From Selaginella moellendorffii (lineage: Eukaryota > Plantae > Lycopodiophyta), in the NCBI RefSeq assembly GCF_000143415.4, contig NW_003314283.1:1109734-1173733 (forward strand): a stretch of DNA of 64,000 bases, written 5' to 3'. The translations under genes were made by a program, and so were the position numbers. Positions 40,980 through 49,100 of the stretch are shown here, piece after piece. The stretch's first letter is position 1. Every line of letters begins with the position of its first letter. The notes under the pieces are model-generated. The model saw only the letters and a program-made list of their open reading frames with translations. It was not told the DNA's origin and made no database searches.

Positions 40980-41366
40980 TCTGGAGGTATGACTTAATTC
41001 GTGTTTCTTTATACTCAGTGCTAATCATTTGTGTGTCCTAGAAGATGGACAACTTGATGCACACCTTCTGATCTAAAGAATGGAGTAATAAATGTCTTTA
41101 TGTGCTAAAACTATGTGATTTTGGGCATTTTTCGCTTTGCAAGTGATCCATTAGTGGTTATTTCTTTGATAGCCACGACATGTACTGTGTAATTCGCTAC
41201 TGGTAATAATAAAAAAACTCTCAAGCTTGTTTGAGAGTTGACAACGACAAGTCTTAACGGTGACGTGTCAGCACGGCATGATGACGTGTCTGTACGGTTT
41301 GGGTCTAGGGTTTTGGATTTTTTGTCTATGTCTTCTAGGGTTTTACAGGCAGCGGTGGCGGTGAGG

Positions 41367-44159: not shown

Positions 44160-44782
44160 CGCTTTTGATGCAGCTTAGAGCATATGCCCATACACAGAAT
44201 ATAAAATCTTTGGACACCGATGCCACACGTCTCGTTTGTGGACGATTCTGCTCACAGCATATGGGTGCCTATAGCGAGGCTTGGACTGATTATGGTGTGG
44301 GCGTGGGGACGGCCATGGTGGCGGCATATGCCCATTCATGGCAGCCGGACTTCTTATTTGAGAACATGCCCTGACGGTCACTAGCGCCGCGAAGAGCAGG
44401 AAGATTCCATACTTGAGATGGCACAGCAGCCATAGAAACGCCTGCGCGATCAGAAACGTGAACAAGAGATTGACCAACACCGTGATGCTCTGCCCCGCTG
44501 ATCGCGTCTCGAGCGGGAAAATCTCGCTCAGACGCTAACAGGTGCTTCGAAGCTGTTTTCTCTCTTTGTGATCAACGGTTTTCCACTCGCTCCGAAAACC
44601 ACCAGCTCGGTCAAGATCACGAGCTTCGAGAACAGACGAAGTTCTTCCTGATTACATTAAACACCCTTTCTAATTCCTCTTGACCTCAGTTTGCTCCAAA
44701 AGTTGTTAGAAGTTTAAGAACCAAGTTTCCCTCTCGAACTTGCTTTCATGGTGGCCCGTGAAAGTGATGAAATTCCCAGTGG
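44160..44782 (+). pseudogene. Decayed PPR remnant followed by a PRMT10 3'-end remnant
   Basis: GCTTAGAGCATATGCCCAT and GGACGATTCTGCTCACAGCATATG mirror 40270-40391. Translation includes [10 protein letters not shown]...LFENMP. 44538-44640 resembles 42721-42920. Confidence 0.6.
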
Positions 44783-44858
44783 AAAAGAAAAATTTGCACG
44801 AGGTTAAACACTGCCTTTGTAAAAATTTGCACGTAACAGTGATTTTGTCAAAAAGGCT

Positions 44859-44929
44859 TGCACTGCCCGGGAATCGAACCCGGGTCTGTACCGTGGCAGG
44901 GTACTATTCTACCACTAGACCAGCAGTGC
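44859..44929 (-). tRNA. trnG-GCC: tRNA-Gly (GCC)
   Basis: GCACTGCTGGTCTAGTGGTAGAATAGTACCCTGCCACGGTACAGACCCGGGTTCGATTCCCGGGCAGTGCA folds as a full cloverleaf with A/B boxes. A T5 terminator lies 4 nt downstream. Confidence 0.97.
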
Positions 44930-44971
44930 ATCATGTTGGCAATGTGAGGTTTATTCTAACAAAACCGCGCT

Positions 44972-45042
44972 AAACCCTAAGCAGAGAATATACTCGAATA
45001 TCCCAGCTTAAACCCTAGAGGCGGCGGCCATGGACTTATAAG
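44972..45042 (+). promoter_or_regulatory. Telo-boxes (AAACCCTAA 44972, AAACCCTAG 45010) and TATA-like element of the TOM9/snoRNA host gene
   Basis: Motifs seen directly. Telo-boxes are typical of plant translation and ribosome-biogenesis gene promoters. Confidence 0.55.
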
Positions 45043-45097
45043 CGAGGGCGCCGCGTTTTCTTCAAGCCCAGGTATGCGGCGTTTTGCGTCTTTGGTA

Positions 45098-45183
45098 GCA
45101 CAGTGATGAGAGAATTTGGGTTGATGAGCGGGGAAGAAACATCCCCCTTTGATTCTACACAACCTCCTACTCATACTGAGTGC
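45098..45183 (+). ncRNA. Intronic box C/D snoRNA with a 25S rRNA guide (possibly snoR7-like)
   Basis: Box C GTGATGA at 45103-45109, box D CTGA at 45176-45179, terminal stem GCAC/GTGC. Guide CCTCCTACTCAT is complementary to LSU rRNA AUGAGUAGGAGG (rRNA sequence from memory). Confidence 0.75.
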
Positions 45184-45218
45184 CCTCTTCCTCCATTTTT
45201 GCTGTCTTTGTTGTTGTT

Positions 45219-45302
45219 TGGGCAGAGGATGATAGATTCTTGATGGGTAATTTGCGGCTGACCACATTGGTGTGATGCCTCACCTTGGAGACCTGATGCC
45301 CA
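45219..45302 (+). ncRNA. Intronic double-guide box C/D snoRNA (U16 and U55 guides, snoR15-like)
   Basis: 6-bp terminal stem TGGGCA/TGCCCA and variant box C AGGATGA. TGGGTAATTTGCG before D' CTGA (45258) is anti-18S CGCAAAUUACCCA. TCACCTTGGAGAC before D CTGA (45293) is anti-25S GUCUCCAAGGUGA. Confidence 0.85.
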
Positions 45303-45394
45303 TTTGAATGAATGAATCCTCTCGAGAGAGACCCTATAAATCTTGATCGAAACGCTGTGAACTTTTGTCTTTCAGGGCTCTCTGATCTTTGGAG

Positions 45395-45664
45395 ATGGGC
45401 GATGGCTCTGTTTTGAGCCGAGTGAGCAGCGGCATTGCCGAATCGAGGCGCGCAGTGAGCAGCACTTGCGTGTTTGGAGGCCGAGTGCTGCGCAGCACGG
45501 GCAAGGCGGCATGGATTGCAGGCACAACCTTTTTGCTGCTGGTTGTGCCACTTATTTTTGAGGTGGACAGGGACCAGCAGCTGCAGGAGCTTGAGTCTCA
45601 ACAAGCGACGCTGTTGGGTGGTGCGGCCCAGCCTGCTGCTGCTGCTGCGGCTGCGGCCAAATGA
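45395..45664 (+). CDS. TOM9: Mitochondrial import receptor TOM9 (plant TOM22)
   Basis: STGKAAWIAGTTFLLLVVPLIFEVDRDQQ signature. 5'UTR intron GT 45072 to AG 45375. Confidence 0.93.
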   Translation: MGDGSVLSRVSSGIAESRRAVSSTCVFGGRVLRSTGKAAWIAGTTFLLLVVPLIFEVDRDQQLQELESQQATLLGGAAQPAAAAAAAAK

Positions 45665-46108
45665 GGATATAACCATGATTTTGTTCTATCCTGATGATTC
45701 CTGAAGGTCCCGAGTATGGGCACTCATACGAACATAAAAACTGTTAATTGCCTTGGGATCAGAAAAAAAAAAACTAATATGAAAGAAATAAAAATAGTTG
45801 AATATTCATTTGGCTGTTTACAAGAAGCATGAGACCAAGATATTAAGCTGTTTTGATGATCTCATGAGCCATTTGATGGATTATAGTAAAATCTGTTTTG
45901 ATTCTGCCACCAAGTCTTTTGTCCATGCCCTGAGCTTCACTGATCTGCTTAATGCCCTTCATGAAGCTCAGATCTGCTTAATGCCCTTCTTATTGCATCT
46001 TAGGTTGCTTATGGCATCTTGGGTAATGTGATCTTTCTTGAGCTTCACTCATGCTATTATTACATCTTGGGTTAATTTTGGGTTGGATGTCACTTGAAAA
46101 ATTGATAT

Positions 46109-49100
46109 TGTGAGTGTTTGGAATATGGAAAGGGAATACAAGAAAATGTGCATATCAATTAGCCCAAAAACCCTAGTTTATATATAGAAGCGAGTGGTCC
46201 GAATTGAAACCAATCCGACGGTTACTAAAATCCCACTATGCTAATATTAATATAGTCGTACACTTGGCCTTCACATCATCCCCTCCTCTTGGAATAATGG
46301 AAGACCATTAGGGTTCTTTTGTAGATGGGCCGGGATCGGGAGGAACGTCAGGAGGAGGCATTGGTGGATTTGTAGGTGGTATTAAATCCTCCTAATCCCT
46401 TTGTACTAAGAGTTTTAGTTGCTGCACATGCACAATTTCTGGAGTATTGGCCTGTTAAATATCATGCCGAACCTTATAAACTTGTGGTCCAACTTGCCGC
46501 AACACTCGATACGGTCCTTTTTACTGCGCAAGAAGCCCTTTAGATAAACCATGTATTGTAAGATGGGGAAAACGGACTAACACAAAATCATCCACTTTGT
46601 ACTCCGCAAGTGGATGATGATGGGAATTGTAGCGCCATTGTTGTCCCACTTGTACACAGCCTAAGTGTTCAACAGACTCTGTTCGGACAAGTGGAAGAAT
46701 ACTCGTCAAATACTGATCACATGACCTAGCATCGATAGCTCGTGGCAACCGCAAAGGTAAACCCAACTCCGTTGGTAATATTGGATCATGACCATATAGG
46801 AGTTTATATGGTGAAGCACCAATAGAACTCTGCACCCCTGTGACATATGCATACCGAAGAGACGGCAAATAACCATCTCAATCCGAATGTTGAAAGTTCA
46901 CATATTTCGCAATCATCTTTTTAAATGTCCGAATGAGCCGTTCTACCAGACCGTTTGATTGTGGATGATAAGCACTCGTGAAAGTGTGGCGTATCCCCAA
47001 CCGAGACGTCAAGACATGAAATGCCTCAACCATAAATGCAGGACCATTATCCGAAAGAATCCGCTCTGGACAAGAATACTGGAGCACCACTTGATTGAGG
47101 AGGAAGTATCCAACAGTAGTTGCAGAGGCGCTAGCAAGAGCACCAACTTCCACCCAACGAGTTATGTAGTCAGAAGCAATAATAACATACTCATTGTTAG
47201 CAGTCGACCGTGGAAAAGGTCCTATAAGATCAAATGCCACCAACTCAAACGAACAGGAAACTGCAATTGACTCTAACCGTCCTTCCGCAACACGAGGGGG
47301 AGTATTACGAGCTTGGCACCAAACGCAGCTACGCATATACCGGATAATATCACATCGCATCTCCAGCCAATTAAAAGACCGGCGCAGCTTCTCAGTTAGA
47401 CAACAATGTCCCATATACCCACCTTGAATTGGAGAATCATGGTAGGCATGGAGAAACCGCAGAATAAAGATAGAAGGCACCACCAGCCATAAATGATCAT
47501 CAGGATCCGTCCCCACAAAATAAAGAAGGCCATCTTCAAAGCGATATTGAGAATGTAAATGCAGGAAAGGCAAGTCATCAGCAAGTGATGCAAGATTCTC
47601 AAACCCATCTCGAAGCCTTCAAATTCATGGCTTAATTTTTTTAGCCTCGCAAACCTCATCAAGAGAAGGTAGATCTTGCTCTACGCCTTGTGGACACTGA
47701 ACGTCAAGAACAGCAACTGTCGAGGGCATAGAATCCTCGTCTAGAAAATCCACAAATGCTGGAACAATAGGTTCATCAGAAACATGAGAAATGAGTGGAG
47801 AAGGAAGAGGAGCTCGAGAAAGGGCATTAGCATCAGCCATAGAACTCCCTGGGCGATGAACAAAATCATAAACATATATCTGAAACTTCAAAGCCCACTG
47901 AACAGTATGACCAACTAGGTTCTTCCGCTTCAATAATGAAGTAATAATAGCATGGTCACCTTCAAGTAACGTCCAAGAACCATGTAGATATGCATGAAGT
48001 TTCTTGAAGTTTTTAGACTGCTGCTAAACACTCCTTCTCTGTCGTGGAGTAGTTTATCTCTGCTAGTTGTAATTTATGACTTATATATACAATGGGATGG
48101 CGGTGATCAGGCACACTCGAGCTCTCTTGCATTAACACACCTCCAAGACCAATGTCAAAAGCATCCACGTGCAAAACAAAATGTCGAGTGTAGTTAGGAT
48201 ATGCCAAAACTGGAGGAGTTGTCAATAGCTCTTTGAAATCCCCGAATGCCCGCTCACAATCCGGAGACAAGATGAAAGATGACGTTGATGATTTCAGCAA
48301 TGCTCGCAACGGTGCAGTACGATCAGAAAGATGATCCATAAAACAACCGAGATACTGCACCTTGCCTAAGAAGCGTTGCACATCATTCACTTCGGAGTAG
48401 GGAACTTCAGAATAGCCACAAGTTTGTCAGGATCAACTTGCAAACCCTCACGAGAAATATGGTACCCAAGATAAGTTGTGTCCTTGGACCCAAACATGCA
48501 CTTCGACCGCTTCAGCTTTAAACCAACGTCACGTAGCCAATCCAACACTTTACAAACATCACAAAAGTGCTCCTCCTACGTCCCCTCTGAGTGGATCAAG
48601 ACATTAGCAATGAAGTCAACAGTCACCTCCGGCATATTGCAAAGAACCTCGTCCATCATCTGCTGGAAAGTTGCTGAAGCATTGTTTAAACCAAACGGCA
48701 TCACCAAAATCTCATACAAACTAAATGGTGTATGAAAAGCAGTCTTTGGAATATTTTCTTCGGCCATCGATACTTGCCAGTACCCAGAAGCAAGATTTAA
48801 CTTGGTGAACCAACGACTTCGCCCCAAATGATCCAAGAGATCAGCAGTGTGAGGAAGAGGGTACACATCTGGGATCGTCACTTCCTTTAACGGATGATAG
48901 TCGATACAGAAACGAATACTCGTATTAGGCTTCATCACAAGATGAGATTCACATGCCCAAGGATTCCACAACTTCTGAATAACACCCTTCTCCAACATCT
49001 CCTTGACGTTTGCACATAAAATCTTGATTTCCTTGGGCGACCGACAACGAACAAAAACCTTGATTGGATGAGCATCCCCGGTTGGAATCGGATGACGTGT

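Follow-up and report, generated by a model that had tools for sequence, protein, structure and literature searches.

The plus strand of a 64-kb window on scaffold GL377587.1 of the Selaginella moellendorffii genome assembly GCA_000143415.2 (the window being the whole stretch of DNA that was analysed, 64,000 nt) carries a TOM9 gene whose 5′UTR contains an intron with two box C/D units, both in sense orientation and here called unit 1 and unit 2. A tRNA-Gly(GCC) gene and two telo-boxes are found upstream. The coordinates of all features are compiled in Table 1.

The TOM9 locus and its 5′UTR intron

Contigs from four public runs of four studies, labelled only 'RNA? (a guess)', were placed on positions 44500-46500, and the joins between exons were read from these contigs only. 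One spliced contig of run X3 (depth 464) displayed a raw splice joint at 45068>45373, which after the 'cut +3' shift corresponds exactly to a 304-nt intron with GT..AG ends and an exon joint at 45071|45376. The coding sequence is contained entirely in exon 2. Its 89-aa product matched the Pfam domain Tom22 with 34.2 bits (curated cut-off 28.7) and has plant TOM9/TOM22 proteins as relatives; judged by its sequence, the ORF downstream of the intron is that of a Tom22/TOM9 protein. An earlier note on this DNA had proposed a two-gene box C/D cluster in a spliced 5′UTR intron of TOM9, which is borne out by the exact joint (45072-45375), the Tom22 domain and the anatomy of the units.

Table 1. Features of the TOM9 locus and of the two intronic units (positions in the window).
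Feature	Position	Strand	Basis or remark
tRNA-Gly(GCC), divergent neighbor	44858-44930	-	ARAGORN; Rfam tRNA 58.8 bits
Telo-box AAACCCTA	44972-44979	+	Upstream of likely transcript start; identical in second haplotype
Exon 1, untranslated	45002-45071	+	5′ limit approximate: loose adapter-bearing contig end at 45002 (X3) and splice joint
Second telo-box AAACCCTA	45010-45017	+	Inside 5′UTR; kept in second haplotype
Intron in 5′UTR	45072-45375	+	Spliced contig, X3
Unit 1, putative Z105-like box C/D snoRNA	45094-45186	+	Z105 28.4 bits (below threshold); unique motif; haplotype identity; contigs of four runs
Unit 1 terminal stem, GCAC / GUGC	45098-45101 / 45180-45183	+	
Unit 1 C box, GUGAUGA	45103-45109	+	
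Unit 1 candidate D′, AUGA	45124-45127	+	
Unit 1 internal hairpin, GGGGA...UCCCC	45130-45146	+	
Unit 1 D guide	45163-45175	+	
Unit 1 D box, CUGA	45176-45179	+	
U-rich spacer between units, 30 nt	45187-45216	+	Strongly diverged between haplotypes
Unit 2, assigned as snoR15/Z101 orthologue	45217-45304	+	Rfam RF00358 66.1 bits; guide pairing
Unit 2 terminal stem (5 bp), GGGCA / UGCCC	45220-45224 / 45297-45301	+	
Unit 2 C box, AGGAUGA	45226-45232	+	
Unit 2 18S guide (D′ guide)	45244-45256	+	
Unit 2 D′ box, CUGA	45258-45261	+	
Unit 2 C′ box, UGAUGC	45273-45278	+	
Unit 2 LSU guide (D guide)	45279/80-45292	+	
Unit 2 D box, CUGA	45293-45296	+	
Exon 2 with entire TOM9 coding sequence	45376-45790	+	3′ end approximate; contigs stop at 45773-45795
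TOM9 coding sequence, 89 aa	45395-45664	+	Uninterrupted ORF; Pfam Tom22

The upstream region agrees in part with the description in the earlier note. Its telo-boxes were found at 44972 and 45010, and the tRNA-Gly that it placed back-to-back with the snoRNA genes is present. However, this minus-strand gene is directed away from TOM9 and is closely followed by a T5 terminator of its own; it therefore does not belong to the snoRNA unit. Dicistronic tRNA-Gly-snoRNA genes of plants were reportedly described by Kruszka et al. in 2003. As in these, a tRNA-Gly and a C/D snoRNA are separated by about 170 nt or less, but here the tRNA is encoded on the opposite strand; this orientation and the T5 run that follows the tRNA do not fit a tRNA-snoRNA dicistron.

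Just past the tRNA-Gly terminator, the 13-nt string AAAAATTTGCACG occurs twice, at 44788-44800 and 44821-44833, 33 nt apart. The entire window contains seven telo-boxes versus 2.6 expected. Among the others, a minus-strand pair 30 nt apart (41306-41343) and a plus-strand copy at 46168-46175, beside a stretch of TATATATA, probably mark promoters of neighboring genes. In the untranslated exon 1, a 16-nt indel (45050-45065) distinguishes the two haplotypes, while the surrounding telo-boxes and the splice site are kept. The hexamer AGCCCA, which is the site II motif (TGGGCT) in reverse, is located directly 5′ of the 5′ splice site (45065-45070) and is likewise kept in haplotype 2.

Unit 2 and its rRNA targets

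Unit 2 is closed by a terminal stem and has a D box and a C box with one mismatch. The latter deviates from RUGAUGA by a G in place of the normally invariant U at position 2, and does so in both haplotypes. In the Rfam scan, unit 2 matched snoZ101 (RF00358) with 66.1 bits (gathering score 44; E 1e-10 for the whole window) over the full model (positions 1-96 of 96), and its copy in the allelic haplotype reached 68.4 bits. This family assignment makes unit 2 orthologous to Arabidopsis snoR15 and rice Z101. The terminal stems with C and D boxes that the earlier note had described for each unit were found in both of them (GCAC/GUGC and GGGCA/UGCCC).

The Rfam scan detected no rRNA within the 64-kb window; guide pairing is given here for 57 eukaryotic rDNA loci from one metagenome scan for the LSU target, none of them from Selaginella. 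The D′ guide of unit 2 forms 13 Watson-Crick base pairs with 18S CGCAAAUUACCCA (GCGCAAATTACCCA, eight loci), and the D guide forms 13 base pairs with LSU GUCUCCAAGGUGA (GTCTCCAAGGTGA, 55 loci), both in rRNA of metagenomic eukaryotes. Where the next LSU base is a G, i.e. GUCUCCAAGGUGA(G), the latter pairing extends to 14 base pairs. The fifth pair upstream of D′ selects an A in the 18S rRNA and that upstream of D a C in the LSU rRNA. Around the selected A, a C at -22, an A at +28 and a C at +33 were present in 8/8 loci and a G at -48 in 7/8. Around the selected C, all 55 loci had C at both -13 and -10, G at -5 and A at +11, and 35 of the 55 had T at +32. With the two exceptions of 18S -48 and LSU +32, these bases are mostly as expected from the Arabidopsis methylation map. 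Because the neighboring bases largely agree with this map, the nucleotides selected by the two guides are, as far as pairing can tell, the equivalents of Arabidopsis 18S A440 and 25S C1860, like those of snoR15. The D+5 rule had led the earlier note to the same 18S adenosine and to the LSU cytidine of U55.

AtsnoR15 belongs to RF00358 (clan CL00057) and targets SSU Am438 (human Am484) and LSU Cm1850 (human Cm2791, U55/U39) (PMC3511168). In current numbering, both Arabidopsis RiboMeth-seq studies give this pair as 18S Am440 and 25S Cm1860 (PMC8583080; PMC8053127), and the human counterpart of 25S Cm1850/1860 is Cm2791/2804, guided by U55/U39 (PMC3511168, PMC8583080, PMC8053127). These three sources agree with the statement in the earlier note that Arabidopsis snoR15 carries both guides on one RNA. 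Its naming of the 18S guide holds in part: AtU16 guides the same Arabidopsis 18S site as snoR15, with HBII-429 given as human guide (PMC3511168), and yeast snR87 fits by arithmetic only, the yeast column being blank in two tables. None of the guide strings was found in the supplement of PMC8053127.

In supplement 5 of PMC5122169, the snoR15 D′ guide reads TGGGTAATTTGC(A/G)NCTGA in nine aligned angiosperm species. Unit 2 matches its core TGGGTAATTTGC, and the D′ guide TGGGTAATTTGCG is common to unit 2 and to the barley and Arabidopsis snoR15 copies of the same supplement. Supplement 1 of this survey (Bhattacharya et al. 2016) scores snoR15 as 0 in S. moellendorffii, Physcomitrella (P. patens), Pinus (P. 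taeda) and Amborella. Among 49 of the box C/D families in its table, which has 54 more columns, U36II has the sole non-zero Selaginella entry. Measured against this supplement, in which snoR15 is scored absent from Selaginella, the members described here are new.

Unit 1, haplotype conservation and contig coverage

Unit 1 displays a canonical C box, a D box and a terminal stem. No other RUGAUGA...CUGA motif closed by a stem of at least 4 bp occurs on either strand of the window (128 kb of sequence); in shuffled sequence, 0.16 such C/D-plus-stem motifs occurred per window. Its Rfam scores were 28.4 bits for Z105 (RF00145) and 24.2 bits for Z162, with a gathering score of 45 for each. Because the score lies below the Rfam gathering threshold, we name unit 1 'Z105-like' and not a member of RF00145. 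The scan of the intron that the earlier note had suggested thus yielded unit 2 above threshold (RF00358) and unit 1 below it, and Rfam-based annotation would catch the former and overlook the latter.

The D guide of unit 1, ACCUCCUACUCAU, beside the D box, is identical over 13 nt to the Z105 model consensus (RF00145) and is shared with rice Z105. Moreover, the D′ region GAGAAUUUGGGUUG-AUGA resembles GAGAAUUGGUUU-CUGA of wheat Z105 as given in supplement 92 of PMC5122169. The central part, which contains the GGGGA...UCCCC hairpin, is unlike Z105. For the wheat D′, the same supplement holds an automatic prediction, a weak match (-9.9 kcal/mol) near 18S nucleotide 51, which is not a known methylation site; among the searchable supplementary files of this paper (200 of 621), a D′ target file is named for Z105 and none for the D guide. 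Our literature search found no paper mentioning snoZ105.

The D guide of unit 1 forms 10 contiguous base pairs (45163-45172) with LSU GAGUAGGAGG and 12 in one locus, again in metagenomic rDNA; a longer LSU complement of 12 bp or more would be AUGAGUAGGAGG. Of the three rRNA guides of 12-13 nt claimed in the earlier note, the two of unit 2 (13 and 13-14 bp) hold; for the third, in unit 1, contiguous pairing in these metagenomic loci is 10 bp, and 12 bp in one of them. The A selected by the unit 1 D guide precedes the U24 C site by 92 nt and corresponds to about A1355 in Arabidopsis, where neither of the two Arabidopsis RiboMeth-seq studies mapped a methylation (PMC8053127; PMC8583080). For the D′ region, no consistent rRNA match was found among the tested metagenomic rDNA loci. 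Homology of unit 1 to U38 or snoR7 was rejected, because the position of the LSU site fits neither A1143 nor A1377; furthermore, the D′ region lacks complementarity to C473 of 18S, the site of snoR7.

Comparison of the two haplotypes revealed different degrees of conservation along the intron. All 93 nt of unit 1 are identical, and unit 2 has 2 differences in 88 nt. Outside the units, the intron differs at 36 of 124 alignment columns and the spacer at 11 of 31. Gap columns were counted singly, which inflates Fisher p-values, but the contrast is evident. Folding z-scores of -1.7 and -0.7 are as expected for C/D RNAs and added little.

The sub-threshold Rfam score, the pairing of only 10 bp to conserved LSU rRNA at a position without known methylation in Arabidopsis, and a D′ region with no convincing match in the tested rDNA loci are also what would be seen if unit 2 worked alone and unit 1 were a decaying or chance C/D-like relic without a target. 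We consider this unlikely. A relic would hardly have retained a perfect C box, D box and stem in a motif unique to the window, nor remained free of differences over 93 nt next to a diverged spacer. The 13-nt identity with the rice Z105 guide, the similarity of the D′ region to wheat Z105 and the contigs of four runs that cover the unit likewise argue against decay. We therefore infer that unit 1 is a Z105-like box C/D snoRNA gene. A lesser possibility is that it directs a methylation of lycophyte or monocot type that is absent from Arabidopsis, and that its D′ guide co-varies with a variable hairpin close to the 18S 5′ end.

Contigs of all four runs, each from a different study, covered both units, although contigs do not define the size or the ends of an RNA. 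X1 and X2 contain a contig that extends from unit 2 over the 3′ splice site into exon 2. Together with the guessed RNA label of the runs, this would be compatible with coverage by unspliced pre-mRNA or genomic DNA only and with no accumulating snoRNA, which we regard as very improbable. Depth was zero in the flanking intergenic DNA (44500-44834 and 46041-46500), a spliced form was present, and adapter-bearing contig ends occurred at 45002 and 45773; since the runs thus behave as transcript assemblies, their contigs appear to be RNA-derived. Moreover, the first 15 nt of the intron (45072-45086) were uncovered in 4/4 runs, and coverage began at 45087 (45091 in X2) even with an intron depth of 160. 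Such a gap is unexpected for plain unspliced pre-mRNA, but the haplotype SNP at 45086 may mark an assembly-graph boundary. Because 45086 and 45191 are haplotype SNPs, some contig ends probably are such boundaries. In X3 one contig ends exactly at 45375. The overall pattern would fit trimmed processing intermediates and some unspliced RNA, with contig ends that are partly assembly-graph boundaries.

The RNA-derived contigs fall into two allele sets over 45431-45614, e.g. with G>A at 45431 and C>T at 45451, and both TOM9 alleles therefore appear to be expressed. A loose contig end at 45310 looks like the second haplotype, as judged by eye.

Host gene and comparison with known snoRNA systems

The TOM9 intron was compared with the allelic haplotype and with the TOM9 loci of the S. 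moellendorffii paralogue, Diphasiastrum (three loci), Adiantum, Sphagnum (two loci) and Cryptomeria. A snoZ101 match was obtained at the allelic haplotype only. At the remaining, about nine, loci no snoRNA was detected, and the three guide motifs were absent from them with one mismatch allowed. Hosting of snoRNAs in TOM9 is thus not conserved among the compared loci, and the search in another lycophyte, a fern and a bryophyte that the earlier note had called for (Diphasiastrum, Adiantum, Sphagnum) came out negative. The S. moellendorffii paralogue (59% identity) has a divergent upstream tRNA-Thr(AGU) 1.2 kb away (1746-1819 on the minus strand of its locus, L003) and no snoRNA.

These data bear on the link to mitochondrial biogenesis that had been drawn from the identity of the host. 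If that link were real, hosting under telo-boxes would be a selected device by which methylation of cytosolic rRNA is coupled to protein import into mitochondria. The guides for two conserved rRNA methylations and a core subunit of the import pore would be regulated together by the telo-box promoter that they share, and the maturation of cytosolic ribosomes in Selaginella would be tied to mitochondrial biogenesis. Two telo-boxes do flank the likely transcript start in both haplotypes, and host and snoRNAs are necessarily on one promoter. Nevertheless, we consider such a device very unlikely. The coupling is unsupported because non-allelic TOM9 loci, including the paralogue and that of another lycophyte, lack the snoRNAs and the guide motifs. 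Furthermore, Arabidopsis snoR15 resides in the independent cluster snoR14-1/snoR15/snoR86-2 (PMC2875012), and positions of intronic snoRNAs are unstable and drift among hosts, which need only broad expression (Hoeppner & Poole, PMC3511168). The presence of the two snoRNAs in TOM9 is explained by such drift from one broadly expressed gene to another, and TOM9 most likely is a convenient, broadly expressed carrier.

The anatomy of the sequence, the splice joint, the family match, the base pairing with conserved rRNA, the conservation between haplotypes and the RNA-derived coverage converge on one reading: the TOM9 5′UTR intron very probably hosts two sense box C/D snoRNAs, the snoR15 orthologue unit 2 and the Z105-like unit 1, with the host gene as mere carrier. 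By analogy with known plant intronic and polycistronic snoRNA biogenesis, both units are presumed to be processed, assembled into RNPs and active in methylation. Pol II would transcribe them together with the host from the telo-box promoter. Cleavage in the U-rich spacer and exonuclease trimming would release them from the spliced intron or the pre-mRNA, and trimming would halt at the terminal stems after binding of Snu13, Nop56, Nop58 and fibrillarin. The D′ guide of unit 2 would then put fibrillarin on the equivalent of Arabidopsis 18S A440 (human A484), and its D guide on the LSU equivalent of Arabidopsis C1860 (human C2791/2804).

On this reading, two snoRNA genes are added to a genome whose snoRNAs are barely catalogued, and the dual-guide design of snoR15 would be pushed back to the base of vascular plants. 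The locus would be another case of snoRNAs moving among broadly expressed host genes and involves no new mechanism.

Like snoR15/Z101, unit 2 combines two guides on a single RNA, the one at D′ directed at 18S Am440 and the one at D at 25S Cm1860. In contrast to Arabidopsis snoR15 with its independent polycistronic cluster (PMC2875012), it is located in the intron of a protein-coding gene. AtU16/HBII-429 and human U55/U39 target the same two nucleotides as unit 2 (human 18S Am484 and 28S Cm2791/2804; PMC3511168, PMC8583080), but humans use separate snoRNAs for the two sites, whereas unit 2 would serve both. For the 18S site, the Rfam family of unit 2 differs from that of AtU16/HBII-429. The C box AGGAUGA also sets unit 2 apart from snoR15/Z101.

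In plants, clusters of intronic snoRNAs are known from a variety of host genes. The present arrangement, an intronic cluster with a member of the snoR15 family, is ordinary for plants, and no special mitochondrial link is seen; a literature search found no paper on intronic snoRNAs together with TOM9. Studies of rice and Chlamydomonas, cited in PMC2875012 and PMC5122169, reportedly describe intronic snoRNA gene clusters. As in these clusters, several sense-strand snoRNAs share one intron and are separated by a short U-rich spacer, whereas TOM9 as host and a lycophyte as lineage are new.
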